A DNA stretch of 64,000 nucleotides from Obrimoposthia wandeli (taxonomy: Eukaryota): contig CDROCS010004705.1 in assembly GCA_977020255.1 (NCBI GenBank), positions 62,001 to 126,000 of the forward strand. The letters run 5' to 3'. The position numbers and the translations under genes are program-made. This document shows positions 12,347-62,068 of this stretch, piece by piece. The notes beneath the pieces are model-generated. The model was not told the DNA's origin. It saw only the letters and a list, made by a program, of their open reading frames with translations, and searched no databases. Every line of letters begins with the position of its first letter. Within the stretch, counting starts at the first letter, position 1.

Positions 12347-12365
12347 AGTATCTCTTAATCTACAT

Positions 12366-12470: not shown

Positions 12471-12499
12471 AAAAAAGCCCATGCTAGATGGGCTTTTTT
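12471..12499. terminator. Intrinsic terminator after the small membrane-protein gene
   Basis: AAAAAAGCCCAT-GCTAG-ATGGGCTTTTTT hairpin with A/T tracts on both sides. Confidence 0.8.
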
Positions 12500-12539
12500 G
12501 TCTGGTCAGTTTAAGGAAAATTGAAAGCTGTTTAAAATT

Positions 12540-12737: not shown

Positions 12738-12909
12738 TTTCTAACTCCTATTAGTGATGGGTATGTCCTCATCGATGGAGCTATTATCTATGCCTCAGCT
12801 TTAGTGTGTGCTCAAGCCAGTAAGCTTTACATTTTGTAAACTTGGGCGGCTAAAAGTGCAGGTCATGTTAAAAACCTGCAGAGTGCTTCTGCAAGCAAAA
12901 CATCTTAAG

Positions 12910-14953: not shown

Positions 14954-14956
14954 GGG

Positions 14957-27842: not shown

Positions 27843-29564
27843 TTAGCGATCTTCAGCTACTTTAAAAATCATACTGCTTTGGTGCAAATCAACCGCTAAA
27901 CCAGCAAGTTCTTCGCCTGCAATTGTTGTTTGGCGAGTGGTTTCAGAGTTTTCTTCAGCAATATTGCGAATAATTAATACGTTAGTATTTATTTCTGAAA
28001 CTACCTTACTTTGTTCTTCAGCTGCCGTTGACACTTGATCATTAAACTCAGTGATAGTGTTGACTGAAAGGGTGATTTTTTCTAACGACAATTTTGCAAC
28101 ATCAGTGATCCCTAGCACTTCAGTTGTTTTATCACGGCTATTATTCATCATCTTCGAAGCATCCTCAGACCCTTTTTGCAGATTGGTTATTAGCTCGTTT
28201 ATTTGATCTGTTAATCCTTGGGTTCGACTTGCTAAGTCTCTTACTTCATCAGCTACGACAGCAAAACCTCTACCGGCAGATCCCGCGCGAGCAGCTTCAA
28301 TCGCAGCGTTAAGGGCCAGTAGATTGGTTTGTTTTGCCACTGATTGAATGGTATCTATCACACCTGAAATACCAATTGAATGAGCATTAAGTTCTTCTAC
28401 AATGATATTGGTTTTATCCATGTCATTTTCTAATTCACTCATCGCTGTTACGCTTTCAGCGATAGCGGCTGATCCTTCTTTGACCGCTTGTGTTGTCTCA
28501 CTCACTATTTCAGATGCACTACGCGTGACTTTCGCTACATCTTCAGCGGCATAAGATAATTCGTGTATAGCCGTAGCTACTTGATCAGTCTCCCTATATT
28601 GCTTTGATACCGCTTGGGTGTTTTGAAAAGATATGACAGATAGTTCTTCAGAGGCGGCGGCAAGTTGTGTTGAATTAGAGGCTACACTAGAAATAAAAGT
28701 GCTCAATGTTACAAAGAGCGCATTTAAATCGCGACCTAATTCCGCCACTTCATTATTACCTCTTTCATCAACTCTAAGCGTTAAATCAAGGTCATCATTG
28801 ATACGGCCAATGGTTACACGGGCCGCCGAGATTCTTTTTGTGATTGACCTAGAAATGTAGAAACCAATAAATAAAATGAATAAGGTAGATAGTGCACCAA
28901 TTAAAACAACTTGTTGAATTGCATCTTTTTCATGTTGTTCAGCTCGTAATCCTGAAGCGAGCGTAAATTCCTCTAACTCTCTGAGCAAATTTTCTAATAA
29001 ACGGTTCAATTCGCTTTCTTCTGTCTCTGTTTTTTCTGCTAATAGTTCGGCATCATGAAGCTGTTTAGCGTCAATTTTTGCCTGTATTTCATAAATATGT
29101 GATTCGAATAAGCTATGGCTTTTATCCAGTTTGTTTAGTTGCGCTGAAAATTCATGTAATTTAGTTTTATCGGCATTGTTAGTAGAGTGTTCTTCTAAAG
29201 TGTTAATGAATTTTTCTGTATCAGCAAAGACAGTACTAATTTTCTTAGAAAGTTCTTTAAAGTGATGCGTTGCCTTATCATATTTTTTTTGAGCACTTTG
29301 CTGTTCTTCTTTAGACAGATTCAACAGTACGCCGTAGTGAAGCATTCGTTCAAATTCAATAGATTGCTCTAATTGCTGGATTGTGATTTCGGTAACCATT
29401 ATTGAGAGAGGAATATTCTCTTCGGCAACACTGACTAATTCTTTTTTAATGGCGAATAATTGTATAATAGTGGTAGAAATTACAAGCAGCAGCCCAATAA
29501 TAGCGATAGTACAAAATGTAAATAGCTGTTGCTTAATAGTCAAGATTTTCAATAAATTCATCAT
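27843..29564 (-). CDS. Methyl-accepting chemotaxis protein (helical periplasmic sensor + HAMP)
   Basis: Two TMs, DLTLRV...[41 protein letters not shown]. Confidence 0.93.
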
Positions 29565-37720: not shown

Positions 37721-37967
37721 TTTATGACCTCTATATGGTTAACGATTAGCTGCAATTTATTTTCTTGAAATTTTTATTAGATGTGAATTCAGCCATCGGA
37801 GATATTAATTTTTTGCATATACCTATATTAACACCCTCGTAATTGATGTGGGTTATTTCTATACATGAGGCTTCAGAGCTTGCTTTATTCATTGTTGTTT
37901 TTCGTAAAGGGCGCCAACCTTTATCTAAATGTAGACAAGTAAAAGCCCAAGCTGGATGAGTGCTATA

Positions 37968-38030
37968 AAATAACGGTGTCAGGTCTTTCTTCTTGGCCTG
38001 CAGTCCAAAGAAAAGACCTTGCCCAGCATT
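37968..38030 (+). repeat. 63-bp hairpin direct repeat, family B, copy 1
   Basis: AAATAACGGTGTCAGGTCTTTCTTCTTGGCCTGCAGTCCAAAGAAAAGACCTTGCCCAGCATT. Confidence 0.9.
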
Positions 38031-38255
38031 CTAGTTTGAGGTTGTTTTGGCGTAATTTAAAAAGTGCTGCTCTGTGTTACCTGTCCTGTCGTAAAAAAGA
38101 GAAGAGTTACTTCAAAAAACCAAACTTTGGCTAGAAGCCTACGTTAAGTCTGATAGACTAAGGACACATATATTCCCTAAGCATTGATAAGAACTTATTA
38201 TTTAATAATATGATTCGATACTAATTTAACTAAATTGAAGTAAGACAACATAACT

Positions 38256-38576
38256 ATGAAAGCATATAGCAGCATTGAAGAGCGGATCCAAATTTTAGAA
38301 GATCAAGTTTTGATACTAAAAGAAGAAATTGAGGTACTAAAAACACCTCCAACCAGTAACAATGAAAGAATTGTTTTAAAGTATATTGAAACAGGCAGCA
38401 CGGGTAAAACAAAAGATTTTGCGCGCGAATTAGGTATTAAGTCAGTGCGTGGATTGTTCTCATCTGGTGATGTGAGCAGATTACTTAAAGAGGGCGCTGA
38501 CGACATATCACCCGCATTATTAGCCATCGCTAATAAATTAGCTAGTGGTCACAATAAAAATGGACCTAGTCGATAA
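38256..38576 (+). CDS. Hypothetical 106-aa protein (N-terminal coiled coil, possible HTH)
   Basis: Clean ORF; IEERIQILEDQVLILKEEIEVL heptads followed by YIETGS..KTKDFARELG. Confidence 0.6.
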   Translation: MKAYSSIEERIQILEDQVLILKEEIEVLKTPPTSNNERIVLKYIETGSTGKTKDFARELGIKSVRGLFSSGDVSRLLKEGADDISPALLAIANKLASGHNKNGPSR

Positions 38577-38647
38577 GTTGACAGTCGTGGGGGTTGAGAG
38601 TCAGGCTTTTTCTTTTGCTCAATATTTACAACCATCATACAAAAGCA

Positions 38648-38710
38648 AAATAACGGAGTCAGGTCTTTCTTCTTGGCCTGCAGTCAAAAGAAAAGACCTG
38701 AGCCTGTATT
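38648..38710 (+). repeat. 63-bp hairpin direct repeat, family B, copy 2
   Basis: AAATAACGGAGTCAGGTCTTTCTTCTTGGCCTGCAGTCAAAAGAAAAGACCTGAGCCTGTATT. Confidence 0.9.
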
Positions 38711-39022
38711 CCGCTTGCTAACTCCTCCTTAAGTATAGCAGGCGTTAAAGACTCGTTATTTTTTAAAACACTTAACTAACATTGTAATGATAGGTTCATA
38801 ATTAATCGCTAGTAACCCATGCAATATCGCTCTATGATTGTTTAAAATCTGAGCACTCTCTTCAAACTAAACCTGTGACATGCGCCTTCATATTTCATTA
38901 AGCTGTTATAAATATCACTATAAAGATGCGTCTTGCAGTGTTTTTATCACCCCAATAAGTGGTAACCGTCTCCACCAAATACACATTAGTGTGTTATTGA
39001 ATTATTAAGGGAATAATTATTT

Positions 39023-40324
39023 ATGTATCGTTCAAATTCGACATCTGGAACCATACTGTCAACAGCTTTCATACTAATGTCTTTAAGCTATAGCAGTAGC
39101 GTGTTTTCTGCAGACCTATTTGATGATCTATTAGAAAGCGCCATTGATAATATTTCTAAAGAAGTTCAAGCTACTAAAACCACCGTTAACAAAGCACCTA
39201 CCAAATCAAACGTCAGTCAGGCTAAACGAAAGCGTCCGAATGAAGAGCATCACGATGGGGTAAGCTATAAAGACTGGTCAACCAGTATTGCTACTTTTAA
39301 AATGCAAGGCAAATGGACAACTATCTGTTCTTTGAGTACAGGTGCTTTGGGAAACAAAGGTATCAATATTGAAATACCTTGGGGGAGTATCGGCCCAACG
39401 ACAATGCCAGAGGTCGTTTACTTTGAAACGGTACAAGCCAATCAAAGCACTACCTTTAAGCATAAACAAGAAGTTGAATGGCGTATATCCTCCAAAAGAG
39501 ATAATTATAGTTTCCAAACTCATGCATTCGCTGGTATCGACAGCTCCGGCAACCGCTACGCAGACAGTAAGATACTGAATAACTTAGATGCAAAGAAATC
39601 CTTACAGCTACTGCGAGCATTTGCCAAAGGAAATACGCTAGCGCTATCTGATAGATATTCAGGCGTCGAATTACATACTGCATCTTTAAGTGGTTTTTCA
39701 GCCGCTTACCTTAAAGCAGCTGATTGGTGCGCTTTTTCCGCCGATAGTGTGCTTAAAGTAGCCCCTTCATCGACTTATGTTCAAGTTGTTGAAAATGACC
39801 CTATTCCTACACCACAATTAGACAAAGATCTCCTTGAGACATATCAAGGCTGGGAAGCTTCAGTACAGGCCTATTCCTCGGATGATGGTGACCTCGTCAC
39901 CAATTGTTCCATTCGAACAGGAGGCAATGGCTCTGATGCGATCCAAATATACGCATCAAAAAGAGATGTACTCCCCCCTGATGCTCCGTTAACAGTAGTC
40001 TTTCAAGAAGCCACTGCGCGTGGTTTGACAACGCGGCTCAAAGAAAATGATCGCATCAGCTGGATTATTGATAGCCGTGACAATCGAGACACCTATAAAA
40101 GTGACGACACGCGTACCGGTCATAATGACGGCATTGCTTTCGCTGAGAATTCAATCCAAGGTAATAATGCTTTTCTCTACTCGTTAGCCCATGGCGATGA
40201 AATTAATTTACGCTACGCCAACGGCTCACAAAATTTATATAGTTCATCACTGAAAGGGTTTAGAGATGCCTATCGTAGAATGTCGCAATGGTGTGGGTTT
40301 TCAGCGAATAGTGCCTTAGATTAA
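39023..40324 (+). CDS. Exported protein with two tandem IalB-like domains (hypothetical)
   Basis: Signal peptide; internal duplication YKDWS...C...SLSGFSAAYLKAADWCAFS / YQGWE...C...SLKGFRDAYRRMSQWCGFS. Confidence 0.65.
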   Translation: MYRSNSTSGTILSTAFILMSLSYSSSVFSADLFDDLLESAIDNISKEVQATKTTVNKAPTKSNVSQAKRKRPNEEHHDGVSYKDWSTSIATFKMQGKWTTICSLSTGALGNKGINIEIPWGSIGPTTMPEVVYFETVQANQSTTFKHKQEVEWRISSKRDNYSFQTHAFAGIDSSGNRYADSKILNNLDAKKSLQLLRAFAKGNTLALSDRYSGVELHTASLSGFSAAYLKAADWCAFSADSVLKVAPSSTYVQVVENDPIPTPQLDKDLLETYQGWEASVQAYSSDDGDLVTNCSIRTGGNGSDAIQIYASKRDVLPPDAPLTVVFQEATARGLTTRLKENDRISWIIDSRDNRDTYKSDDTRTGHNDGIAFAENSIQGNNAFLYSLAHGDEINLRYANGSQNLYSSSLKGFRDAYRRMSQWCGFSANSALD

Positions 40325-40580
40325 TATTAATGATGCTCTTTTTGGTGCCTCTGGGGGCTTATATTCCCCTGATATATTTTTATTTATCTGGTCATAACAC
40401 TACAGTAGCTCTTCAGCATCTTTTATCGCCAAATTAAATATTCTAATGGCTGTGGACATATGACTAACTGACTCCTTTCCGTTTAAGCAATTTTTTATGT
40501 GTTTAAAATATATTTAGGTAGATGAGTGTCTTGCAACGACCCCGACTCCAATAGCCCACAAAATTTCTACTATCGAACTG

Positions 40581-40642
40581 AAATAACGGGGTCAGGTATT
40601 TCTTCTTGCCTACAGTCAAAAGAAAAGATCTGACCTCGTATT
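40581..40642 (+). repeat. 62-bp hairpin direct repeat, family B, copy 3
   Basis: AAATAACGGGGTCAGGTATTTCTTCTTGCCTACAGTCAAAAGAAAAGATCTGACCTCGTATT. Confidence 0.88.
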
Positions 40643-40862
40643 CTAACTTGCTAGATTTTTAGTTAAAAAAGTAGAAATGAAAAACAAACTCACTCTAGTT
40701 AGCTGTTTGCAACGGAGTCAAAAGGATGATGTTCTTTGGGTAATGTATTCCTTTGAGGTTAATCATTTGAATAACCTCGGTAAAATTCCGGCGATTATGG
40801 ATTAATCAACGGAACTTTGCGGCCCAATCACCCGTTTTCGTACCGTTGGACTTCAACCACCG

Positions 40863-41333
40863 TTATCGAATTTTCTGATCCAGCGTAGCTTTTACTGGAT
40901 CCATTACGATAATCGTTCGAAACCATTTAACATTTTTATTATTGTAAAACAGGTCCTGACTCATCTCTTCATATTCAGCCATACTCGAGACACTCAATAT
41001 TAAAATAAAATCAGCTTCTCCCGTCACGTAATAGCATTGTTGGATAGCAGGCCCAGAGAAACATGCTTTAAGTTTTGCTATGTCAGCTGCGCCTGCACGC
41101 TCCATATGCACCTCAACCACAATGGTTATTAATCTACCAATTTTTACGGGATCAATGACAGCAGTATTTGCTTTGATAACCCCTTCTTCTTCCATTTTTT
41201 TAATTCTACGTTGCACGGAAGCTGTTGATAGGCAAACTCTTTCAGCTAGTACCCGCAACGGAGTTTTATTCTCTTCTTGTAAGATGATGAGTATTTCTTT
41301 ATCGAAATTATCTAACAGGCTTGGCATATTCAT
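40863..41333 (-). CDS. Lrp/AsnC family transcriptional regulator
   Basis: LDNFDKEIL..LQ...LAERVCLS..SVQRRIKKMEEEGVI; YVTGEADFIL; divergent from the catabolic operon. Confidence 0.93.
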   Translation of the reverse strand: MNMPSLLDNFDKEILIILQEENKTPLRVLAERVCLSTASVQRRIKKMEEEGVIKANTAVIDPVKIGRLITIVVEVHMERAGAADIAKLKACFSGPAIQQCYYVTGEADFILILSVSSMAEYEEMSQDLFYNNKNVKWFRTIIVMDPVKATLDQKIR

Positions 41334-41442
41334 TGATAAATTTTCTCACTAGGTGCAGTAATTTAGAGCACTGTTATCACTTTAAATGAGATATTATTTC
41401 AATCAATTAATAGCGATTTACACGTAAATAAGGAAAATAATA

Positions 41443-42603
41443 ATGCATTGGCAAAGCAAGCTGGCCCAGCCTCAAACGTTATCTGATCGAGAGTTCAAAT
41501 CTCTCGTTACACCTACGTATAGAGGTTCAACTGTATTATTTGAAAAGCAATCAAAGGTTGTTGATGGTTGGGAGCAGAATAAAATTGGTTATACCTATGG
41601 TTTATATGGCACGCCAACAACATTGGAATTATCTGAGCGTATCGCACAATTAGAAAATGCTCATCACACGTTTATTGTACCAGGTGGGCAAGCAGCCATC
41701 GCTCTTATTTATTTTGCAACATGCCCGAGCGGAAGCCATGCCTTAGTGCCTTATAGTGCTTATGGGCCGAATAAAGAAATGGCTCAAAACATGCTCAAGA
41801 ATCTAGGCATTGAAGTAGAAGCTTATGATCCTATGCTTGGTGCTGGCATCAGTGACCTTATTCGCCAAAATACAGCACTCATCTGGGTTGAGAGCCCTGG
41901 TTCAGTAACGATGGAAGTTCAAGATATTCCTGCTATCTGTAAAGCTGCACATGAGAAAGGTGTCGTTTTGGCTTTAGATAATACTTATGCTGCAGGCGTA
42001 CACTTTGATGCCTTTGGTCACAATGTCGATATCAGCATGCAAGCGCTAACCAAATATGTGGGTGGGCACAGTGACTTATTATTAGGGACTGTTTCGGTTA
42101 ACTCTGAAGCGCTCAAAAACAAGGTTGGCTCCACGTTTAAACAATTGGGTTTAGCAGTTTCACCAGACGATTGTAGCTTGGCACTTAGAGGACTACAGAC
42201 TCTTGCCGTCCGACTTGCACACTTAGAAAAATCAACACTTGAGGTGGCAAACTGGCTTGCAAAGCATCCTTGTGTTGAGCAAGTCTTGCACCCAGCTCTT
42301 CCCTCTTGTCCGGGACACGAGTTCTGGAAGCGTGATTTTACGGGCTCTAGCAGTGTTTTCTCATTTACTTTCAAAGACACTTTTAAAGCCTCTGAAGTGG
42401 AAAAGTTCATTGACTCGCTTTCACTCTTTCGAATAGGAATGAGCTGGGGAGGCGTAACTAGCCTAGCACTGGTTTACCCCGAGATAGACAGGCCAAACAA
42501 AGACTACGAAGGGCGTTTAGTTAGGTTAAATATTGGTCTAGAAAATATCGATGATTTACTCAGCGATTTAGAACAAGCCTTTCAGGTTATTACGGATCAA
42601 TAA
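41443..42603 (+). CDS. PLP-dependent cystathionine beta-lyase (MetC)-like C-S/C-N lyase
   Basis: PTYRGSTVLF, YGLYGTPT, ESPGS, DNTY, QALTKYVGGHSD (PLP Lys), GMSWGG, RLNIGLE. Confidence 0.9.
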   Translation: MHWQSKLAQPQTLSDREFKSLVTPTYRGSTVLFEKQSKVVDGWEQNKIGYTYGLYGTPTTLELSERIAQLENAHHTFIVPGGQAAIALIYFATCPSGSHALVPYSAYGPNKEMAQNMLKNLGIEVEAYDPMLGAGISDLIRQNTALIWVESPGSVTMEVQDIPAICKAAHEKGVVLALDNTYAAGVHFDAFGHNVDISMQALTKYVGGHSDLLLGTVSVNSEALKNKVGSTFKQLGLAVSPDDCSLALRGLQTLAVRLAHLEKSTLEVANWLAKHPCVEQVLHPALPSCPGHEFWKRDFTGSSSVFSFTFKDTFKASEVEKFIDSLSLFRIGMSWGGVTSLALVYPEIDRPNKDYEGRLVRLNIGLENIDDLLSDLEQAFQVITDQ

Positions 42604-42654
42604 GTCAGCATTCATAGGCTGAATTAACATTTAGCAGTGTATTAAGGGGAATAT

Positions 42655-43818
42655 ATGAATCAGCCAGTTCGCGGTTTTACTGTACAAGAATTTGAAAATA
42701 GAACATTACGCGCTCAAAAAGTCATGTGCGATATGAAACTTGATGCAATGATTTTTACTACGGAACCTAATGTTAGGTATTTCACTGGGTTTTTATCTCA
42801 ATTTTGGCAGAGCCCAACCCGGCCTTGGTTTATTGTGGTGCCTGCAAAGGGAAAGCCCATCGCAGTAATCCCAGAGATCGGTGCCAAAGGCATGGCGCAG
42901 ACTTGGATTGACGATATCTTTACTTGGGCATCGCCTAGACCGGAAGATGACGGTATCAGCTTACTGGCTAACACGCTTAATGCCCTGCCACGCCGACATG
43001 GACGCATTGGTGCAACACTAGGCATAGAGTCACATTTACGTATGCCTGTAAATAACTATTTGCAATTAACGACGATGGTCAGTCGTGATTTTGTCGATGT
43101 CTCTTTTGCTGTTCATGAATTACGCCAAATAAAATCAAGCGCTGAAATTGCAAAAACTCGAGAGATTTGTCGGATCACTAATCTCGGCTTTGACAAACTT
43201 CCCGATTATGCCCGAGTAGGCATGAGCGAACGTGATATATGCAAGCAATTTAGCCTTGATATGATGCAAGCAGGTGCAGACCAAACTCCTTTTGTAATAG
43301 CAGGTTCCGGTCCGGATGGCTACTACGACATTCTTATGGGCCCTACAGATCGAAGAATTGAATCAGGTGATGTGCTACTAATTGACACCGGTGCCGTTTG
43401 GGATGGTTATTTCTCAGACTTTGACCGTAACTGGGCGTTTGATACTGCAAGTGAGGAAACCAAATCTGCTTATCGAGCTACCTACGAAGCAACCACTAAA
43501 GGCTTTGAGGCCGCTAGTCGACCTGGAGCAACCACGACTGATATTTACCATGCTATGTGGAAAGTGCTTGAAGAAAACGGGGCACTTGGGAACGATATTG
43601 GCCGAGTAGGTCATGGTTTAGGTATGGAATTAACCGAAAGACCATCCAATACATCTACAGATAATACTCTTCTCAAACCTGGCATGGTTATGACGCTTGA
43701 ACCTGGCATGACATACGCTCCAAATAAAATAATGTTGCATGAAGAAAACATTGTGATTACCGAAGAGGGTGCTCAATGGCTAACAAAGCGTGCTGAACCA
43801 GAGCTCATTATTATTTGA
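42655..43818 (+). CDS. M24 (creatinase/prolidase) family metallohydrolase
   Basis: Creatinase_N-like start; metal ligands LLIDTG, YFSDFDR, GHGLG, LEPG, HEEN. Confidence 0.9.
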   Translation: MNQPVRGFTVQEFENRTLRAQKVMCDMKLDAMIFTTEPNVRYFTGFLSQFWQSPTRPWFIVVPAKGKPIAVIPEIGAKGMAQTWIDDIFTWASPRPEDDGISLLANTLNALPRRHGRIGATLGIESHLRMPVNNYLQLTTMVSRDFVDVSFAVHELRQIKSSAEIAKTREICRITNLGFDKLPDYARVGMSERDICKQFSLDMMQAGADQTPFVIAGSGPDGYYDILMGPTDRRIESGDVLLIDTGAVWDGYFSDFDRNWAFDTASEETKSAYRATYEATTKGFEAASRPGATTTDIYHAMWKVLEENGALGNDIGRVGHGLGMELTERPSNTSTDNTLLKPGMVMTLEPGMTYAPNKIMLHEENIVITEEGAQWLTKRAEPELIII

Positions 43819-43976
43819 GAAAGCTCTATCCATTATTCAATAGTTATTAACGGAAGTTGTTTTCACGAATAAATTAATCGCACGTTATGCGTGCTTTAAA
43901 TTAGTAGTTAAATCTATTTCTATTTTAAACGCCATTCGTAGCAATGGTTTTACGACTCAACATAAAGGGGGCTCGA

Positions 43977-44744
43977 ATGAATTTTGATGAATATGTTAAG
44001 TTTGAAAAAAAGCTGATCCTTGAACCTGCTCCACGGCCAAATAGAGTACACATTGGTCTTGTTCAGCTTGCAAATGATCACTCACTCGAAACTGACTGGT
44101 CTCATTTGATCGGTACGCAAGCATCTCTTTTTAGCACCCGTGTTTATAAAGAAAATGGCATGTCAAAAAAATCGCTCGATGGTATAGCAGCTGGGATTAA
44201 TGAAGCTGCACTTTTAGTTGCCGATGGATTACCTATGGATGTAATGGCGTTTGCCTGTACTTCTGCATCTATTATTATTGGTGAGGAGAAAGTTTCCCAA
44301 TTATTGACGAAAAATCGTTCCAACATCCCAACGACCAATCCTTGGACTGCAGCAAAAGCCTCGTTTAACTACCTACGCGCTAAAAAAATTGCTGTCTTCT
44401 CTCCTTATCCTAGTGATGTGAACTATGCACTACATCAACAATTATCAGAGGAAGGCTTTGAGGTAGTTGCTATAACTTCTCTAGGTGTTTTTGATGATAA
44501 CGACCTTCATAAAGCGTCGCTCAAGAACTTTGAAACAGGCCTTGCATACCTTACAAAAAATACCGGTGCTGAGGTTGTATTTATGTCTTGCACCAGCCTT
44601 CGTGCTGTTGAAAATATCCAATACCTCGAAGAAAAATACGGCGTTCCCATTGTCTCTAGTAACTCAGCCCTTTTTTGGCACGCGATGCACTTAAGCGGAA
44701 AAAGAGCCAAGTGTCCAGGGTATGGGAAACTACTAAACATATGA
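43977..44744 (+). CDS. Asp/Glu racemase / maleate isomerase family (EutA-like)
   Basis: Two catalytic Cys motifs FACTSAS and FMSCTSLR; VSSNSALFWH. Start ATG 43977 behind an AAGGGG RBS. Confidence 0.88.
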   Translation: MNFDEYVKFEKKLILEPAPRPNRVHIGLVQLANDHSLETDWSHLIGTQASLFSTRVYKENGMSKKSLDGIAAGINEAALLVADGLPMDVMAFACTSASIIIGEEKVSQLLTKNRSNIPTTNPWTAAKASFNYLRAKKIAVFSPYPSDVNYALHQQLSEEGFEVVAITSLGVFDDNDLHKASLKNFETGLAYLTKNTGAEVVFMSCTSLRAVENIQYLEEKYGVPIVSSNSALFWHAMHLSGKRAKCPGYGKLLNI

Positions 44745-44814
44745 TAAATCAGTAGGTTGTAATTTAAAAACATTACAGCTTGGTATTTTTGTCTTAATCA
44801 TAAAGGTTACTTCT

Positions 44815-45972
44815 ATGAACGTTGTAAAGCAGGCCATTGAATGGCGGCATACTTTTCATCAACATCCAGAATTTGGATTTGAAGAAGAGTTTACTTCCAA
44901 CTTTATTGCAAAAACACTGGAAAATTACGGTATAGAAGTCCACCGCAATATCGGTAAAACGGGTTTAGTGGGAATTCTTAAAAAAGGAGAGAGCAGTGCT
45001 TCTATAGGGTTAAGAGCCGATTTTGATGCGCTTAAAATTTATGAAGAAAACACTTGTAATCACCGCTCACAGATTGATGGCATGATGCATGGCTGTGGCC
45101 ATGACGGACATACTGCAATGCTGCTTGCCGCCGCCGCACAACTCTCACAAAAAACCGATTTTAACGGCACAGTTTATTTTGTTTTTCAACCAGCTGAGGA
45201 GCAAGGAACTGGAGCGAAAGCAATGATTGATGATGGTCTGTTCAAACGTTGGAAAATTGATAGCATTTTTGCAATGCATAACATGCCTGGAATCGAGCTA
45301 GGAAGTTTCTTGATCAGTCCCTCTTCTGTTATGGCGGCTGAAAATCATTTCAAGATTGAAATATTTGGCCTGGGTGGTCATGCTGCTATGCCGCATTTAG
45401 GCAGAGATCCTCTTATCACAGCATGCAATATATGTACTGCTCTGCAATCCATTATAACTAGAGACTTAGATTCAATTCACGAACCCGCCGTTTTATCTGT
45501 TACTGACATTGAAACAAATGGGGGGGCGAATGTGATTCCCACTACAGTGACTCTGTCAGGTGATACACGTTGTTTCTCTGACGCAACACAAGAAAAGATT
45601 CAAGCGAATATTGAACGCGTAGTTGCAGGGCTATGCGCCTCCGCAGGATTAACATATAGCTATGAATTTTCCAATTGTGTTTTATCTACCGTCAATGACC
45701 CTGAACAGGCGCAAGTTGCAGCACAAGTAGCTCAACGAGTTGTAGGAGAAAATAAAGTGGATACTAGTTGTAAGCCATATTGCACTTCTGAGGATTTCTC
45801 CTTCATGCAAAGGCAAGTCCCAAGCTGTTATCTACTGATCGGCAATGGTGCTGCAGGTCAAAAAGGAGGTACAGCGTTGCACCTTCCCACTTATGATTTT
45901 AATGATGATTTACTAATCACAGGTATTCAGTTTTGGGTTGAGTTAGTCAAAGAGAAGTTAAGTATTAACTAG
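44815..45972 (+). CDS. M20D amidohydrolase (hippurate hydrolase-like)
   Basis: HQHPEFGFEE, RADFDAL, MHGCGHDGH, FQPAEE, SEDF, LH...YDFND. Confidence 0.92.
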   Translation: MNVVKQAIEWRHTFHQHPEFGFEEEFTSNFIAKTLENYGIEVHRNIGKTGLVGILKKGESSASIGLRADFDALKIYEENTCNHRSQIDGMMHGCGHDGHTAMLLAAAAQLSQKTDFNGTVYFVFQPAEEQGTGAKAMIDDGLFKRWKIDSIFAMHNMPGIELGSFLISPSSVMAAENHFKIEIFGLGGHAAMPHLGRDPLITACNICTALQSIITRDLDSIHEPAVLSVTDIETNGGANVIPTTVTLSGDTRCFSDATQEKIQANIERVVAGLCASAGLTYSYEFSNCVLSTVNDPEQAQVAAQVAQRVVGENKVDTSCKPYCTSEDFSFMQRQVPSCYLLIGNGAAGQKGGTALHLPTYDFNDDLLITGIQFWVELVKEKLSIN

Positions 45973-46259
45973 AGAAAATGAACGAGCCTGAGACGCCGTT
46001 GGCAATCAGAGAAATTGGACTTAATTATCGCTAACCATTTAATTCTGACATGCCATTAAGATCGATGCAAAGTCAGGAACTGGTGGGATAAACAGTCACT
46101 GAAATAATATGATTTTTATTATAAAAATAAACAATTGAAAAGGCATTATTATGCACAGAGATAGCGAGCTTAATAAATTCATCGAAAAACAAGGTTTTTT
46201 AGTAAGCCTCAAAGCGACACTTGGCATAAGAGCTATTGTCTTGCTAAAGGAGGAGAAAA

Positions 46260-47045
46260 ATGGCCGATAAAATCATACAAATTGAAAACGTATCTAAAAG
46301 TTTTGGAAGCAATCAAGTTCTGCATGAACTGTGTTTTGACGTAGAACCCGGTGAAAAAATATCGTTAATCGGGCCCAGTGGTTCTGGTAAAACAACTATT
46401 CTAAGAATGCTTATGACCCTAGAGACGATTAATGCTGGCCATATTAAAATCGATGGAGAGCATCTTTGGCATATGCAGAAAAATGACCAATTACTAGCTG
46501 CTGATGAAAAGCATCTTCATAAAATGCGGGAAAAAATGGGTATGGTTTTCCAGCACTTTAATTTATTTCCACATAAAAGCGTTCTACACAATGTGACTCT
46601 CGCTCAAATACTGACAAAAGGGGTATCTCAAAAAGCTGCAGAGGAGCGTGCTATTGAATTACTGACAATGGTGGGTCTCGCTGAAAAAGCTTCTTCAATG
46701 CCTTCTGCACTTTCTGGCGGGCAAAAACAACGCGTAGCTATTGCGCGAGCTTTAGCGCTAGAACCGCGCATTATGCTTTTTGATGAAGTCACGTCTGCGT
46801 TAGATCCAGAGTTGGTGGAGGAAGTGCTAACGGTTATGCACAAACTGGCCGCAGAGACCGATATGACGATGTTGTTAGTCACTCATGAGATGAGTTTTGC
46901 TCATGACTTTTCTGATCGAGTATTATTCTTCGATAAAGGGAGAATCGTTGAGCAAGGTACTCCAGATGAGATTTTTACTCGCCCTAAAGAAGAGCGAACT
47001 CAAGAATTTCTTAGCAAAATACTAGCAGCGGGACAAAGAATTTAA
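46260..47045 (+). CDS. ehuA: Ectoine/hydroxyectoine-type ABC transporter ATP-binding protein
   Basis: [28 protein letters not shown], plus the EhuA-type insertion HLWHM...[13 protein letters not shown]. Confidence 0.88.
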
Positions 47046-47110
47046 ATAACACAGAGACTAATTTTATATCTCAGTAAACAACAATAAAAAACTAAATAAG
47101 GTAAATAATT

Positions 47111-47971
47111 ATGAAAAAGTCAAAAATAATTTCGTTCGCCACTAAAAGCATCACTTCAATAGCTTTAGTTTCGTGTCTATTACCCGCTTACTCTATAGCT
47201 GCAACAACGCTTGAGAAAGCCATTGAGGAAGGGACTCTCAATATAGCGATCGGTATAGCTCCACCTTATTCTGGGATGACCTCCGATGGCGAAATAACGG
47301 GCGGTGCACCTGATGTAACTAAAGCTGTTTTAAAAGAAATGGGAATAACTAATATAAATGCATCTGTTGCTGAATATGGGGCTTTAATTCCAGGATTGAT
47401 GGCTGGTCGCTATGACCTAGTAGCAGCAGGTCTCTATATTAATAAAAAGCGTTGCAATGCAGTGCTGTTCTCAGAGCCAGATGTTTGTGGAACTGAAGGT
47501 TTTGCTTTGAAAACAGGTAATCCTTTTGGGATACAGTCATATGAAGATATAGCTAAGAATCCAGAGATCAAGATGGGTACGTGTGGCGGTTGTACAGAAG
47601 AGTCTCTCGCACGTGAGGCCGGAATTCCTAGAAGCCAAATCACCACAATCCCCGACGAACAAAGCGCACTTAAGATGTTGCAAGACGGGCGTATCGATGT
47701 TTATGCTTATCCATCACTGTCTATCGCATCTTTGCTCAAGAAGGCTAATGACCCTAGTTTAATGATGATTCCTCAAATTAAAAATACTGATGTTGCCTGT
47801 GCAGGAGCAGTATTTCGTAAATCAGATCGTGAATTTCGCGATGCTTACGATGCAGCTTTGAAGCGTTTGAAAGAAAATGGGAAATTTGATGCGATAGTAA
47901 GCAAATATGGATTCCCACCAGAAACGGCCAAAACTACAACTCGCGAAGAGCTGTGTGAAGGTGAAAACTAA
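47111..47971 (+). CDS. ehuB: Ectoine/hydroxyectoine-type ABC transporter substrate-binding protein
   Basis: PPYS...GEITG..PDV, EYGALIPGL.AGRYD...AGLYI...RC..VLFSEP, KYGF; gene order A-B-C-D. Confidence 0.82.
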   Translation: MKKSKIISFATKSITSIALVSCLLPAYSIAATTLEKAIEEGTLNIAIGIAPPYSGMTSDGEITGGAPDVTKAVLKEMGITNINASVAEYGALIPGLMAGRYDLVAAGLYINKKRCNAVLFSEPDVCGTEGFALKTGNPFGIQSYEDIAKNPEIKMGTCGGCTEESLAREAGIPRSQITTIPDEQSALKMLQDGRIDVYAYPSLSIASLLKKANDPSLMMIPQIKNTDVACAGAVFRKSDREFRDAYDAALKRLKENGKFDAIVSKYGFPPETAKTTTREELCEGEN

Positions 47972-48009
47972 ATTTTCATAATTTTTTTATGATCGTACTA
48001 GTGATTTGG

Positions 48010-48031
48010 AACTGCATGTTTGCATGTAGTT
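48010..48031 (+). other. Intra-operon stem-loop after the SBP gene (possible mRNA stabiliser)
   Basis: AACTGCATG-TTTG-CATGTAGTT. Confidence 0.35.
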
Positions 48032-48095
48032 TCATCTATGAGACGACTTTGTATTTAAAAATCGTTTTTTAATACAAAAAGCGCGTTCTCACGAA

Positions 48096-48764
48096 ATGGG
48101 TTTGCTTATGTTAGATTGGTTTGGTTACTTTGTTCTTATTTTTAATGGCGCGTGGGTTACGATACAGCTAACCATCATGGGGATGGCTGTTGCGCTTGTT
48201 TGTGCTTTTTTAGCAGGTTTGGGTAAGCTTTCAGATAACTCTTTTGCGCGAATATCGGCAAATGTCTATATCGAGTTTTTTCGTGGGACATCAATATTTG
48301 TGCAACTGTTTTGGATTTTCTTTGTATTACCTTTAGTCGGTGTGAAATTTTCTCCCATGGCTGCAGGGGTTGCTGCTTTAGGTTTGAATGTAGGCGCTTA
48401 CGCGGCAGAAGTAGTGCGCGGTGCAATTCAAGCCATTCCTCAAGAACAAAAGGAAGCTTGTATCGCTCTTAACCTTAGTCCTTGGCAGAGAATGCGTCAC
48501 GTTATCATGCCGCAAGCTTTCGTCTTGATGATTCCATCCTTTGGCAACAATGCAATTGAATTACTTAAAGGGACTTCTGTCGTATCGCTTATCACTATTA
48601 CAGATATGACTTTTCAAGCGCAAGTTATTCGTGCTTCAACCGGTAATACTATAATCCCCTTTGTTACGATTATTGTACTTTATTATCTAATCTCTTTAGC
48701 CATAGGCCTATTGATGAAAAAGCTTGAACATCGCCTTTCTTATGGTCTGGACGTTATCAAATAA
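48096..48764 (+). CDS. ehuC: Ectoine/hydroxyectoine-type ABC permease
   Basis: YIEFFRGTSIFVQLFWIFFVLP; FGNNAIELLKGTSVVSLI. Confidence 0.88.
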   Translation: MGLLMLDWFGYFVLIFNGAWVTIQLTIMGMAVALVCAFLAGLGKLSDNSFARISANVYIEFFRGTSIFVQLFWIFFVLPLVGVKFSPMAAGVAALGLNVGAYAAEVVRGAIQAIPQEQKEACIALNLSPWQRMRHVIMPQAFVLMIPSFGNNAIELLKGTSVVSLITITDMTFQAQVIRASTGNTIIPFVTIIVLYYLISLAIGLLMKKLEHRLSYGLDVIK

Positions 48765-48777
48765 TTAGGAGTTAGTT

Positions 48778-49443
48778 ATGGAATGGGATTGGAAATTTGC
48801 ATTAGAAATTCTCCCTCAGTTAATAGAGGGCGTCATAATCACAATTCAAGCGACGTTACTTGGAACTATACTTGCGTTACTGGTTGGATTAATTTGGGCT
48901 ATAGGGCGCCGCTCTGAACACTGGGCTATTCGATACCCCGTTATATGGATTACTAGTTTTATACGTGGTACGCCGCTATTAGTTCAGCTCTATTTTTTGT
49001 TTTTTGTCTTACCCGATATTGGCATTCGATTAGATCCATTGGTTGCAGGTATCATTGGTTTAGGACTACATTACTCAACTTATATGGCAGAGGTTTATCG
49101 AACTGGAATTGATAATATCTCTAAGGGGCAATGGGAAGCTGCGAAAGCGGTAAACCTGAGTTATTCACAAACTTGGATTAATATTATTATTCCTCAAGCT
49201 GTTCCTCCAATGATTCCAGTACTGGGGAACTATTTTATATCTATGTTCAAAGAAACTCCCTTACTATCAGCAATCACTGTTGTTGAATTGATGACAATAG
49301 CCCGCACAGAAGCTAATTTTGCCTATCGTTATCTAGAGCCTATGACAATGGTAGGGATTTTCTTTCTAGTGATTAGTATTCCTGCAGCTTTGATGTTAAA
49401 AAGATTGGAAATGCGCCTTAATAAAGACAGGCAAAGAGCATAA
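48778..49443 (+). CDS. ehuD: Ectoine/hydroxyectoine-type ABC permease
   Basis: MEWDWKFALEILP start, IRGTPLLVQLYFLFFVLP, LGNYFISMFKETP. Confidence 0.88.
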   Translation: MEWDWKFALEILPQLIEGVIITIQATLLGTILALLVGLIWAIGRRSEHWAIRYPVIWITSFIRGTPLLVQLYFLFFVLPDIGIRLDPLVAGIIGLGLHYSTYMAEVYRTGIDNISKGQWEAAKAVNLSYSQTWINIIIPQAVPPMIPVLGNYFISMFKETPLLSAITVVELMTIARTEANFAYRYLEPMTMVGIFFLVISIPAALMLKRLEMRLNKDRQRA

Positions 49444-49524
49444 TGCATAGTGATTAGAGACTGTGTCGCAAAGTTTCGTGGATTAACACATAACGCTTGG
49501 ATTTTTGATGAGAAATCAGTAAAT

Positions 49525-49558
49525 AACCCACCTTTTTAGAAGGTGGGTTTGCTTTTTT
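49525..49558 (+). terminator. Intrinsic terminator ending the ehu operon
   Basis: AACCCACCT-TTTTAGA-AGGTGGGTT hairpin followed by TGCTTTTTT. Confidence 0.75.
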
Positions 49559-51843: not shown

Positions 51844-52494
51844 CTAACTTTTTGATGATAACCTTTTCTTTAGCTTAATTTGCCACTCGGGTGCTAACTC
51901 ATCCAAAGCCAGTGCTTGAGACAGTATGTTTTCAGAGTCTACATATTGCTGATCAAAATAAGCTTGAAAGAGTTTTTTAATAGAGATGCCATGAGTCGCT
52001 TTTTTTTCAACTGAGACTATATCTCCAGTTTTGGCGGTGCCGGTTTCTAGTACTCTAAAATAAACGCCGGTGCAGTAATATTGAGTAAAAAGTTTGGGCG
52101 CTACTTTATTATTAAGAGCAAGGGCTAGCTTAAAGCAGGGGACTCTTGGTTGGCTTACTTCAAGTAGTGCTGTGCCGATGCGAAACTGATCCCCGATATA
52201 TATATTCTCTTCACAAAGATTTGAGATGGTGAAATTCTCACCAAACATGCCGCTTGATAGATTTTTGTTATCAAAAGTATCTTGCCAATAAGCATAGTGA
52301 TTAGATGAAAATGCGTACACGGCTTTATGCTCACCACCGTGATAAACGAGGTCTGCTTGCTCATCGCCTATGATGTTCATCTTCTCAATAACCACTTCAT
52401 CACACGTCGGTACTTTAAATATCCCCGTCTTTATTTCTTTACCATTGTGGATAACTGTTTTTGCTTTTGAAATATTGGTTGAAATTATTTTCAT
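51844..52494 (-). CDS. MOSC domain protein (YiiM-like)
   Basis: KTGIFK.P, GDEQAD..YHGG..KAVY, FGENFT, EVSQPRVPCFKL, GVYFRVLE.G. Confidence 0.9.
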   Translation of the reverse strand: MKIISTNISKAKTVIHNGKEIKTGIFKVPTCDEVVIEKMNIIGDEQADLVYHGGEHKAVYAFSSNHYAYWQDTFDNKNLSSGMFGENFTISNLCEENIYIGDQFRIGTALLEVSQPRVPCFKLALALNNKVAPKLFTQYYCTGVYFRVLETGTAKTGDIVSVEKKATHGISIKKLFQAYFDQQYVDSENILSQALALDELAPEWQIKLKKRLSSKS

Positions 52495-57061: not shown

Positions 57062-57498
57062 TGTGCTTCCATTTCCTTGTAGCGTAATTAGAATTTAACA
57101 GTTGGCTTATTAAACCAACAAAGTATCTATTTAAACATGGGCTTATTTAAACATGTATTTTGTGTCTCTGCCAAGCCCTGTTCATTTCTAGTTAATCTAT
57201 ATTGATTTATGGAATCAATCTCCTAGAAGCGCTAGTGATTTTTTTGTATTGCTGCTATTAAAAACTGTGCGTTTATTTAGTTAATAGAGCAATTATTTCT
57301 CAAAAAGAAGCCATTAACGGGTAAGTAATCATCGATAGTTTAATTTTAAATCAAAAGTTTATGTTGTTCAGAATGTTCATTCTGTAATATAAAACGGCAA
57401 TTGATGAAGATTAATATTTCTTAAAATTGTTACTCATGAGGGTCAATACTTAGTTGGCTGTTTTTTGTACGTTCAAGATTGGGAATATAGAGGCAAAT

Positions 57499-59145
57499 AT
57501 GAGTTCTAAAAAGATAACTAAGATCAGTAGCAAGCTAGCGGCTGGCTTTTCACTGATATTACTAATGATGTTAATTTTAACGGTCATAGGTATTAATAAA
57601 GTAAATTTCATTGACGCTACATTAACTGAAATAACCGATGTTAACTCGGTAAAACAACGTTATGCGATTAACTTCAGAGGCAGTGTGCATGATAGGGGAA
57701 TCGCTATACGTGATGTAGTGCTTGCCAGATCGACTACAGAATTAGATGATTTAGTAAATTTGATAGATGAGTTAGATAGTTTTTATCAAATGTCGGCCAA
57801 AGACATGGATGAGATTTTGTCTTCTTCGATGCATATGAGTGCTAACGAAAGTCGCATTATTAAGAATATTAAACAAATAGAGCGCGATACATTACCGCTC
57901 ATTAAGCAGATTATTGAACACAAGCGCGCTCAAGAGATTGATCAAGCAACCGCTGTATTGTTAACTCAAGCTAGGCAAAAAATTATAGATTGGTTAGGCG
58001 CTATCAACCAGTTTATTGATTATGAGGAAGCGGCCAATCAAAAAGCGACACCACTGGCCAGAGAAGTGGCAAGTAGTTTTCAATGGTGGATGATATCGCT
58101 ATTGTCGGTCGCTGTGTTTTTGGGATTGATCATCGCTTTCTTGATAGGGCGTAGTATTAAAATGGCCATTGGCGGTGAGCCTGCCTCAGCTTCTGCCATT
58201 GTTGCTAGTATTTCTAAAGGCGATTTAAGTGAGCGCATTGAAGTCAGTAATGAGCAGAGCATGATGCATTCGGTTTCAGTGATGCAAGCTAAGCTTAAAG
58301 AGACAGTGACCGGGATTATGAATGCCTCTTCACAGCTTTATGAGCAAGCAAGTACGGTAGCTTCAGGATCAAAAAGTGCACTCGATGCTGCGCAACAGCA
58401 AAGTGAAGTAACAGAAAAAGCGGCGCAAAATTTAATACAGATGAATGAAAGTCTTAATGAAATTGTTGAGAAAGTGCACCAAACAGATGAAAACTCGACT
58501 TTAACCTTTGAGTTGTCGCAAAAAGGGCGTGCAGCGGTACTTGAAGTAGCGACAGAAATTGAAAAGATTTCTAGCACTGTTAAAGCCACAGTGCAGCAAG
58601 TTAATACTTTACAAGAAAGAGTATCTGCCATCGGTAATATTGCGAATGTAATTCGTGGAATATCAGAGCAAACCAATCTACTTGCGTTAAATGCAGCCAT
58701 TGAAGCGGCGAGAGCAGGTGAGTCTGGACGCGGCTTTGCGGTCGTTGCTGATGAAGTGAGGCAGTTGGCGCAGCGCACCGGTACTGCCACCGGTGAAATT
58801 GAAACGATGATTAACCAGGTACAAGAAAATACTCAAGAAACAGTCACAGCGATGCAAACGACTGTGCCACAAGTGGATAGTGGCTTAGCTTTAACACAAG
58901 AGGCGAGTGGTTTATTGGAGAATATTCAACATCATGCTGAAGATTCTTTGTTGAAGATAAAAGAAGTAGTTGAGGCTACTAATGCACAAGTAGACACTAT
59001 TGCGAGTGTTAACAAGAGTGTTGAAGAGATATCGAGTATGTCGCAATATACCGGCGTCACTTTACAAGATAATTCTAATGCAGCTTGTGCTCTAGAAAAA
59101 TTGTCTACCCAGTTAAAAGATCAAGTTAGCTACTTTAAATTATAA
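57499..59145 (+). CDS. Methyl-accepting chemotaxis protein (4HB_MCP sensor)
   Basis: [15 protein letters not shown] 4HB pattern, [35 protein letters not shown]. Start ATG 57499 behind GAGG. Confidence 0.93.
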
Positions 59146-60529: not shown

Positions 60530-62068
60530 ATGACATTTACAGTAGAGAATAACGGTGAAAACCAAGTATCAGCCTTATTAATTTCATTGCTAGGCACTGA
60601 TCAGTTCGGCAGTTGGATTAATGGTGAGCTTGTGGCTGGCACGGGTGAAAATATTGATTTAGTGAACTCAGCCACCGGTAAAGTGTTTATGCAATACCAA
60701 GATGCGGGTGATAGCAATGTAGATGATGCAGCACAAGCTGCTGTTATGGCGCAGCGCCAGTGGTGGGCAATGAGTGCGGCGGCGCGTGGGCGCACTATGT
60801 ATCATTGTGGCATAAAAATCCGTGAAGGGGCTGAAGAGCTCGCAAGGCTTGAATCAATTTCTGCCGGTAAACCCGTACGAGATTGTCGTGTGGAAGTGGC
60901 TAAAGTAGCAGAGATGTTTGAATACTATGCTGGCTGGTGCGATAAAATGACCGGTCAGGTGATACCTGTGCCTACCAGTCATCTAAATTACACACGCCAC
61001 GAGCCTCACGGTGTCGTGGTGCAAATCACACCTTGGAATGCTCCTATCTTTACTGGTGGCTGGCAGATAGCACCGGCTATTTGTGCGGGCAATGCGGTGT
61101 TGCTAAAGCCTTCTGAATTAACCCCTTTAAGCACCACTGTTTTGGCTAAGTTGTTAGAAGATGCTGGTATTCCTAAAGGGCTTGTAAATATTATTAATGG
61201 CCTTGGTCAAACGACAGGTACCGCGGCTATTGCTAATAAAGCCTGTAAAAAGGTCATTTTTGTAGGCTCTCCTAAAACGGGTAGCATCATTGCGGGCGCA
61301 GCTGCAAAGCGGGTCATCCCCTGTGTATTAGAGCTTGGTGGTAAGTCTGCCAATATCGTGTTTGATGATGCTGATTTAGATCGAGCAGTGGTGGGTGCAC
61401 AAGCCGCCATTTTTGCAGCAGCAGGGCAAAGCTGTGTTTCAGGATCAAGATTATTAGTGCACAAAAATGTTTATAGCCAAGTGGTTGAAAGGCTGGCATC
61501 AGCGACTGACAAGATAGCGGTGAATTTACCTTGGTTAGAAGATACGATGGTGGGGCCGGTTAATAACATTAATCAGTTCAATCATATTAAAGCATTGGTC
61601 GCGCAAGGCGTGGCGCAAGGTGCGAGTGTGGCAGCGGGTGGTGGTGTTGCTCAAGTAGCAGGGGGTGAAGGGGGTTATTTTTATAAGCCGACGGTTCTTG
61701 CGAATGTAGCTAATTGCATGAGTGTGGCACAAGAAGAAATTTTTGGCCCTGTGGTATCTGTTATATCTTTTGATGATGAAGAGCACGCTGTTGAACTGGC
61801 TAATGATAGCCGTTTTGGTTTAGCAGGTGCGGTGTGGACTGCAAATGTTGGGCGTGCTCATCGTATGGCTGCGCAAGTAAATGCCGGTACTTTTTGGGTG
61901 AATAGTTATAAAGCAATCAATGTTATGTCACCGTTTGGCGGCTTTGGTGAAAGTGGTTATGGGCGCTCAAGTGGCTATGAAGGGCTACTTGAGTATACTC
62001 AAACTAAAAGCGTTTGGATTGAGACAGCACAAGATGCGCCCATTCAATTTGGTTACAGTGTCGAGTAA
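60530..62068 (+). CDS. Aldehyde dehydrogenase family protein
   Basis: ITPWN.P, LKPSELTP, LELGGKS, GQSCVSG, EEIFGPV, PFGG...SGYGR. Confidence 0.93.
   Translation: MTFTVENNGENQVSALLISLLGTDQFGSWINGELVAGTGENIDLVNSATGKVFMQYQDAGDSNVDDAAQAAVMAQRQWWAMSAAARGRTMYHCGIKIREGAEELARLESISAGKPVRDCRVEVAKVAEMFEYYAGWCDKMTGQVIPVPTSHLNYTRHEPHGVVVQITPWNAPIFTGGWQIAPAICAGNAVLLKPSELTPLSTTVLAKLLEDAGIPKGLVNIINGLGQTTGTAAIANKACKKVIFVGSPKTGSIIAGAAAKRVIPCVLELGGKSANIVFDDADLDRAVVGAQAAIFAAAGQSCVSGSRLLVHKNVYSQVVERLASATDKIAVNLPWLEDTMVGPVNNINQFNHIKALVAQGVAQGASVAAGGGVAQVAGGEGGYFYKPTVLANVANCMSVAQEEIFGPVVSVISFDDEEHAVELANDSRFGLAGAVWTANVGRAHRMAAQVNAGTFWVNSYKAINVMSPFGGFGESGYGRSSGYEGLLEYTQTKSVWIETAQDAPIQFGYSVE

Follow-up and report, generated by a model that had tools for sequence, protein, structure and literature searches.

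A candidate catabolic cluster coupling an EhuABCD-type importer to a co-conserved set of MetC-type, M24, EutA-like and M20D enzymes

A 64-kb stretch of DNA (the window; positions 62,001 to 126,000 of contig CDROCS010004705.1, assembly GCA_977020255.1, Obrimoposthia wandeli) carries a nine-gene cluster (40863–49558) in which an Lrp/AsnC-family regulator, a MetC-type lyase, an M24 metallohydrolase, a EutA-like protein and an M20D amidohydrolase are accompanied by the four components of an EhuABCD-type importer. The cluster is probably catabolic, induced by its own substrate, and not an ectoine pathway. As to its function, we give an even chance to a catabolic route in which the importer and the four enzymes convert a cysteine derivative that resembles ectoine, either cyclic or N-acylated, into pyruvate, ammonia and either sulfide or a thiol. 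The importer would take the compound up, the two-cysteine EutA-like enzyme would interconvert its stereoisomers, the metal-dependent M24 enzyme would open the ring or cleave an amide- or amidine-type bond, and the M20D enzyme would strip the remaining acyl group to leave a cysteine-type L-amino acid. Beta-elimination of this freed amino acid by the MetC-type lyase would then yield the final products, and the divergently encoded regulator may sense the amino-acid intermediate. We infer the order and chemistry of these steps, as well as the class of substrate, by analogy with the routes for ectoine, hydantoins and 2-aminothiazoline-4-carboxylate (ATC).

That the four enzymes belong together, as the first-pass annotation of this DNA had proposed, is borne out by their distribution. 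A scan with the M24 protein, restricted to one genome per species, returned at least 584 loci; the best 80 were examined by mapping the window proteins onto them and clustering all neighbouring open reading frames (ORFs). The MetC, M24, EutA-like and M20 genes are co-conserved with the Lrp gene in ten loci from Vibrio, Shewanella, Psychrobacter, Zobellella and metagenome contigs. Five species of four families are among the hosts, namely Vibrio fluminensis, V. marinisediminis, Shewanella hanedai, Psychrobacter fjordensis and Zobellella maritima (loci L001–L004 and L034), and a scan of metagenomes with the lyase added three loci of the same order (L091–L093) and one distant version (L098). Per-enzyme identity for the set lies between 56 and 94% in L001–L004, L034, L081 and L091–L093. 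The distant version, at positions 1599–14958 of a 742-kb metagenome contig (Ga0209578_10000012), comprises EutA-like, M24, MetC and M20 genes; its neighbours code for a PotD-type ABC importer, an OYE-plus-Pyr_redox flavoenzyme of 689 amino acids, a second M24 protein and an aldehyde dehydrogenase.

The coupling of this set to ehuABCD, also part of the original proposal, did not prove to be conserved. The full nine-gene order was found elsewhere only in L081, a 10.5-kb JGI contig on which eight of the nine proteins are 91–97% identical to those of the window and the EutA-like protein 82%; L081 is thus a close relative and not independent evidence. At the other MetC-type loci, the transporter genes within or next to the enzyme genes code for an APC-family permease or for EamA/RarD proteins, whereas Ehu is the sole transporter in the window cluster. 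Since the four enzymes and the Lrp gene recur with other transporters, they form a real unit, in which Ehu would be a lineage-specific transporter replacement.

All nine ORFs are intact and lie at the positions and on the strands first given for them, eight on the plus strand and the Lrp gene divergent on the minus strand; the family names are likewise upheld by concurring Pfam and NCBIfam assignments. As annotated, a strong terminator-like hairpin closes the cluster (49525–49549, plus strand; an 11-pair stem with 5 G–C pairs, followed by a T-run). A spacer of 288 bp separates the M20 gene from ehuA and contains a promoter-like site. Together with the restriction of the Ehu link to the window and the non-independent L081, and with the location of the nearest other EhuB relatives (64% and 53–56%) in different clusters of an EutD-like/EutA-like type, this spacer could indicate that importer and enzymes are two unrelated neighbours, ehuABCD taking up ectoines for osmoprotection or some other use. 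We find this quite improbable. Importer and enzyme genes share a strand, no terminator-like site was found in the 288-bp spacer, and one strong terminator closes the whole set. Every other MetC-type locus owns a transporter, so that the presence of Ehu alone in the window cluster looks like displacement, and Ehu-type importers are also built into related clusters of Sneathiella and of locus L049, described below.

The M24 protein (42655–43818, plus strand; PF01321, Creatinase_N, and PF00557, pita-bread) sets the cluster apart from the described ectoine routes. It scores 55.8 bits with the EutD model TIGR02993 (cut-off 613) and 70 with the DoeA_2 model NF038259 (cut-off 575). Its best solved matches are Xaa-Pro dipeptidases/prolidases (E=8e-30), and the ectoine hydrolase DoeA (6TWK), though present in the bank, gave no match to it at E≤1e-10. 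In a control, a EutD-like M24 protein from another locus (L083) matched 6TWK at 2.5e-100; its identity with the window protein is 21%. The M24 enzyme is therefore not a plain EutD ortholog, an identity that the first-pass annotation had named as one part of a refutation. No variation is seen at its metal-ligand positions D244, D255, H320, E349 and E363 across 18 diverse relatives, and the spacings of these positions (11, 65, 29, 14) compare with 11, 64, 29 and 14 in the prolidase of P. furiosus. The distance from EutD and DoeA, taken with the five retained ligand positions, points to a metal-dependent hydrolase of its own lineage. Relatives number in the thousands, many at 65–86% identity, and bear generic names only. 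Two other identities were considered and rejected. Creatinase (1CHM) is matched only at 2.4e-16, and the window protein keeps all of the metal ligands, which creatinase is not known to possess. A DddP-type dimethylsulfoniopropionate lyase does not fit either, as the DddP-like proteins reported in Vibrio have 445 amino acids and belong to a different cluster and family; no DddP structure was among the matches of the window M24 protein at E≤1e-10.

Gene-content searches were confined to the window and covered, besides the nine cluster genes, 29 other larger ORFs. Neither the cluster nor these 29 ORFs include an AstE/AspA-type EutE, an OCD-type EutC, a class-III aminotransferase or a MocR/EnuR regulator, and no EutB, Atf or Ssd was found among the window genes scanned, in agreement with the absences noted originally. 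Loose likeness to the genes sought was seen for a PALP enzyme of 448 amino acids (26018–27364), about 15 kb from the cluster, and for an aldehyde dehydrogenase (60530–62068) beside a 3-hydroxyisobutyrate-dehydrogenase-like gene, about 11 kb off. The window cluster and the Eut/Doe ectoine cluster have in common the Ehu importer, an AsnC/Lrp regulator, a EutA-like protein and a probable first hydrolase of M24 fold, followed by a deacylase. They differ in that the window M24 is no ortholog of EutD or DoeA, in that the window deacylase is of the M20D type and not an AstE/AspA-type EutE, and in that EutB, EutC, Atf, Ssd and EnuR are missing from the window cluster, as is Glu21 from its EhuB. The Eut/Doe route ends in transamination and oxidation to aspartate, whereas the window cluster ends in a pyridoxal phosphate (PLP)-dependent beta-lyase. 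The distance of the M24 enzyme from EutD and DoeA and the lack of these genes in the window thus sustain the earlier suggestion of a route distinct from Eut/Doe.

The EutA-like protein (43944–44744, plus strand; PF17645, Amdase/EutA-like, Asp/Glu racemase superfamily) reaches 158.7 bits with the EutA model TIGR02990, under its cut-off of 318, which places it in a paralogous branch of the same superfamily. All 43 relatives compared retain both Cys105 (in CTS) and Cys216 (in SCT), whose counterparts in arylmalonate decarboxylase are positions 74 and 188. The best match in the Protein Data Bank (PDB), 3IXM, has Cys74 and Cys188; we take it to be the G74C variant that racemises, the wild-type decarboxylase having Gly74. 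This is the signature of the two-base racemase/epimerase type, with one cysteine in each half, and it supports the racemase role first proposed.

The M20 protein (44815–45972, plus strand) scores 327.5 with the M20D model TIGR01891 (cut-off 153.75) and has both metal motifs, HGCGHD and QPAEE. Its best specific match is DoeB2 (NF038260), at 326.5 and under the cut-off of 550, a model with which an M20 protein from an unrelated context reaches 329.5. The nearest structures are the N-acyl-glutamine aminoacylase 6SLF, YxeP 1YSJ (E=3e-60) and ILL2 1XMB, and the RefSeq name of an ortholog is ‘M20 aminoacylase family protein’. The enzyme is thus predicted to be an aminoacylase-type deacylase. Of the parallel drawn earlier with the amidohydrolase of the ATC route, the deacylase role stands and the carbamoylase type does not: carbamoylase models give only about 36 bits, and this identity was rejected here, although the Rhizobium variant described below may use such an enzyme.

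The likeness to the hydantoin and ATC routes lies in their logic, by which a cyclic amino-acid derivative is racemised, the ring is opened and an M20-fold enzyme removes the N-substituent, so that an L-amino acid results (cysteine with ATC). The ring opener of those routes is of the dihydropyrimidinase or AtcB type, in the window an M24 enzyme; an N-carbamoyl-L-amino-acid amidohydrolase acts there in place of an aminoacylase-type M20D; and a dedicated terminal lyase and an importer belong to the window cluster. The cluster therefore works like both the Eut/Doe and the hydantoin/ATC systems and yet stands outside the defining membership of each.

The MetC-type protein (41443–42603, plus strand; PF01053, E=8e-100) passes the cut-off of the cystathionine beta-lyase model NF005456 (545.9 against 500) and that of TIGR01324 (393.4 against 365.9), which supports the beta-elimination role first assigned to it. 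Its nearest solved structures are the MetC enzymes 1CL1 and 8SA7 (E about 1e-82), of the E. coli/Klebsiella type, and it carries the PLP-lysine motif QALTKYVGGHSD. Identity is 75–85% in L001–L004, L034 and L091–L093. A housekeeping role is made less likely by its position in a catabolic operon and by the second MetC copy that V. fluminensis and V. marinisediminis carry; the enzyme is most likely the terminal one of the cluster, in the beta-lyase branch of its family. The regulator (40863–41333, minus strand; HTH_AsnC and AsnC_trans_reg of Pfam) has generic-Lrp scores only in NCBIfam; an ortholog with 64–92% identity adjoins every MetC-type locus.

Further indications on the substrate come from a sister module. 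In about 20 loci of Vibrionaceae, Shewanella and Pseudovibrio, orthologous M24, EutA-like and M20 genes stand beside three divergent genes, for a diaminopropionate ammonia-lyase (DpaL; 576.7 bits, equivalog cut-off 532), RidA and a YheO-like regulator. Compared with the window proteins, identity is 73–80% for M24, 56–61% for EutA-like and 55–61% for M20. The two modules share these three orthologs, their core order and a transporter in or beside the enzyme genes; they differ in having DpaL and RidA instead of MetC, a YheO-like instead of an Lrp regulator and, as importers, BCCT, TRAP, EamA or a Glu-type Ehu (one whose EhuB retains the glutamate discussed below). The scheme of racemising, opening, deacylating and beta-eliminating also fits the module that ends in DpaL. 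Among 77 M24 proteins placed in a tree, the six linked to MetC form one clade (SH-aLRT 100) nested among the DpaL-linked proteins of Vibrionaceae, so that the MetC form is a derived branch of the DpaL form. Both forms occur together in three genomes, those of V. fluminensis (L001/L013), S. hanedai (L003/L021) and Zobellella maritima (L034/L051), the MetC-type and DpaL-type modules of S. hanedai lying about 12 kb apart on NZ_VKGK01000009.1; this argues for two related and yet distinct substrates. Fixed differences between the forms amount to seven in M24, among them R249W between two metal ligands, and to 24 in the EutA-like protein, including residues beside both catalytic cysteines. With DpaL in the sister form and a beta C–S lyase here, the product of the deacylase would most simply be a three-carbon beta-substituted alanine carrying an amine in the one case and a thiol in the other, and not the four-carbon diaminobutyrate of the ectoine route.

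The pairing of a lyase with M24 reaches far beyond these genera, to Desulfobacterota, Sneathiella, Oceanospirillaceae, symbionts of sponges and gutless worms, and rhizobial plasmids, and the importers that go with it across the family are of the BCCT, TRAP and Ehu-type ABC classes, with EamA also present in DpaL-type loci. The TRAP binding proteins of the family match TeaA (2VPN, 3GYY) and UehA (3FXB) with E values between 1e-50 and 1e-67, other solved TRAP proteins being far worse matches. BCCT, TRAP and Ehu are known types of ectoine carrier (PMC5924519; PMC13188858). The recruitment of these three types speaks for a solute that is compact, zwitterionic and similar to ectoine, rather than for peptides.

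Some members of the wider family have gene contents of their own. Five Sneathiella loci (L052, L063, L068, L069 and L074) have the order Lrp, EhuABCD with a Glu-type EhuB, DpaL, a molybdopterin reductase and M24, and a EutA-like gene follows M24 in four of the five; L049 holds the same gene types in a different order. The reductase, a cytoplasmic BisC/TorA-like molybdopterin S/N-oxide reductase, hints at an oxidised form of the substrate, which might be an S-oxide, an N-oxide or an N-hydroxy compound. On a plasmid of Rhizobium leguminosarum (NZ_CP016290, 6165–12984; L172), genes for Lrp, DpaL, M24, a polar amino-acid ABC system and a ‘Zn-dependent hydrolase’ follow one another, which extends the DpaL–M24 pair to legume symbionts. 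In a DpaL-type cluster of Photobacterium (L005/L006), a gene for a dCache chemoreceptor comes directly after M20. The one RefSeq record of a DpaL-type cluster that was examined, on a plasmid of Vibrio cortegadensis, has generic names only.

Linear substrates have to be weighed against a cyclic one. N-acyl-S-substituted cysteines resembling mercapturates, or short cysteine peptides, could be scavenged by an M24 dipeptidase, an M20D aminoacylase or dipeptidase, a EutA-like racemase for D-forms and a MetC enzyme acting as cysteine S-conjugate beta-lyase. The nearest solved relatives of M24 are after all Xaa-Pro dipeptidases, those of M20 include N-acyl-glutamine aminoacylase and YxeP, and an APC amino-acid permease is the usual transporter of MetC-type loci. 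YxeP is the N-acetylcysteine-type deacetylase of the S-(2-succino)cysteine route of B. subtilis, and in Corynebacterium Cys-Gly conjugates are processed by a dipeptidase together with a beta-lyase. The yxe system of B. subtilis (snaA-yxeK-yxeP), which disposes of S-(2-succino)cysteine and S-alkylcysteines, likewise combines an M20D deacetylase with a polar-amino-acid-type ABC importer and the release of cysteine; it differs from the window cluster in having no M24, racemase or MetC-type lyase and in using an acetyltransferase and a monooxygenase, neither of which the window cluster has. However, the importers taken on in the wider family (BCCT, TeaA/UehA-like TRAP and Ehu) to our knowledge carry compact zwitterionic solutes and not peptides or conjugates. 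A peptide transporter is linked to the genes in none of the loci, and the invariant pairing of M24 with a racemase-type protein would be unusual for peptide scavenging. We consider linear substrates unlikely on balance.

The importer itself resembles ectoine transporters. EhuA (ABC ATPase; 46260–47045; TIGR03005) scores 429.3 against a cut-off of 345.4, the family-3 binding protein EhuB (47111–47971; TIGR02995) 301.1 against 190.9, and the permeases EhuC (48096–48764; TIGR03004) and EhuD (48778–49443; TIGR03003) 292.7 against 196.95 and 302.7 against 205.2, all four being encoded on the plus strand and above the cut-offs of the ectoine-transporter equivalogs. EhuB matches its S. meliloti counterpart (2Q88/2Q89) at E=2.9e-85, with an identity of about 55–60% as estimated by eye from the alignment, and keeps the aromatic positions Tyr53, Tyr89 and Tyr109 as well as Arg114, which corresponds to Arg85. 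These features could be taken to mean that ectoine or hydroxyectoine is the substrate after all, the M24 protein being a non-orthologous hydrolase and the M20D enzyme DoeB2-like, and a MetC-family enzyme, in place of Atf and Ssd, eliminating the amino groups from diaminobutyrate or from its hydroxylated form. DoeB2 is indeed the best specific match of M20, M20-type deacetylases have been proposed as a replacement for EutE in Bacillaceae (PMC13188858), and canonical ectoine clusters include EutA-like and AsnC-type genes (PMC5924519). We nevertheless hold such a route to be very unlikely: M24 is closer to prolidases and creatinase than to DoeA, the DoeB2 score equals the generic M20D score and is attained alike by an unrelated M20 protein, the MetC-like enzyme falls in the beta-lyase branch, and the diaminopropionate-specific lyase of the sister module would be unsuited to a four-carbon diamino acid.

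A last argument against ectoine concerns the binding site of EhuB. The ligand contacts of S. meliloti EhuB are reported to be Glu21, Phe24, Tyr60, Phe80 and Arg85 (Hanekop et al. 2007). The position of Glu21 is occupied by alanine (Ala50) in the window protein; among relatives, Glu is found in 72 of 82 and Ala in 9 of 82. Two further acidic positions that are conserved in Glu-type EhuBs have also been lost, while the Ehu proteins inside DpaL-type clusters retain Glu. If Glu21 is such a contact, its replacement by alanine may fit a ligand that has no second ring N–H, although the indication is weak. Ala-type EhuB as a general marker of non-ectoine clusters was considered and set aside as not clean, several such proteins standing beside diverged EutD-like or EutB-like genes. 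Two Ala-type importers, at 4302–13793 of L083 and 39–12280 of L086, adjoin a diverged EutD-like M24 (377–414 bits against 613), and both loci also carry EutA-like genes and GntR or AsnC regulators. Also present in L083 are genes for a EutB-like protein and for a large DAO/GCV_T demethylase-like protein, and in L086 an M20 gene and an OpuA-type ABC system. These two loci look, from their gene content, like further uncharacterised variants of ectoine-type catabolism. An ‘EhuABCD’ annotation alone is no proof of ectoine use.

A more specific form of our interpretation would see in these loci a marine family of pathways for undescribed natural relatives of ectoine with a five-membered ring, taken up by re-tuned ectoine carriers. 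Compounds of the imidazoline-4-carboxylate type would lead to diaminopropionate and DpaL, those of the thiazoline-4-carboxylate type to cysteine and MetC, and the change of Glu21 to Ala in EhuB would accompany the replacement of a ring N–H by sulfur. This extension is speculative and we regard it as doubtful. The particular candidates of the first-pass annotation, thiazoline, thiazane and chondrine, are guesses.

Several points weigh against the catabolic role proposed here for the importer and the enzymes, with a cyclic or N-acylated, ectoine-like derivative of cysteine as substrate, or against its five-membered-ring version. Neither an ectoine analogue with a five-membered ring nor a thiazoline osmolyte is known to us from nature. 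DHMICA, an analogue of the former kind, is called synthetic in a review (PMC5924519). Our literature searches found no paper on the module, including searches that combined DpaL with ectoine, M24, RidA, DoeB2 or DHMICA. The four-step scheme is not universal, since some DpaL-type loci lack the EutA-like gene, as in Pseudovibrio, or the M20 gene, and the hydrolase that accompanies the pair in Rhizobium is annotated as being of a different type. MetC-family enzymes are capable of other reactions too. The link of Ehu to the enzyme set is confined to two near-identical sequences and interrupted by the 288-bp spacer with its promoter-like site. The argument from Glu21 depends on the role reported for that residue and is weakened by the Ala-type EhuBs that adjoin diverged EutD-like and EutB-like genes.

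In the surroundings of the cluster, a repeat that forms a hairpin and measures about 65 nt (GGTCTTTCTTCTTGG..CCAAAGAAAAGACC) is present in three copies at 37967–40650, with one orphan ORF per interval. Only about 210 bp lie between the end of the final copy and the Lrp stop codon, so that the catabolic cluster has a cassette-like array as its neighbour; no connection between the two was found. At a distance of 2.4 kb downstream, on the opposite strand, a gene at 51844–52494 codes for a MOSC-domain protein that resembles the 6-hydroxyaminopurine reductase YiiM (106.9 bits, below cut-off) and is probably unrelated to the cluster. Three genes for methyl-accepting chemotaxis proteins (10045–11388, 27843–29564 and 57454–59145) mark the host as a marine bacterium capable of motility and chemotaxis. 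A search of sequencing runs gave traces in marine metagenomes only, without RNA data.

A core of M24, EutA-like and M20 genes with a swappable lyase is found in Vibrio, Photobacterium, Shewanella, Psychrobacter, Enterovibrio, Pseudovibrio, Desulfobacterota, symbionts of sponges and gutless worms, and metagenome-assembled genomes. The module is real, widespread and unstudied, with a neat pairing of nitrogen and sulfur, although each of its steps is inferred. The combination of ectoine-type importers with a non-ectoine hydrolase points to an abundant small organic solute whose marine turnover is unmapped, and which may be a pair of nitrogen and sulfur analogues. The MetC and DpaL forms within the same genomes offer a handle for identifying these substrates. 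Should five-membered ring relatives of ectoine prove to be the compounds in question, the operon would point to a so far unrecognised pool of dissolved organic sulfur and nitrogen in the sea, and to a reaction not yet described for M24 enzymes.

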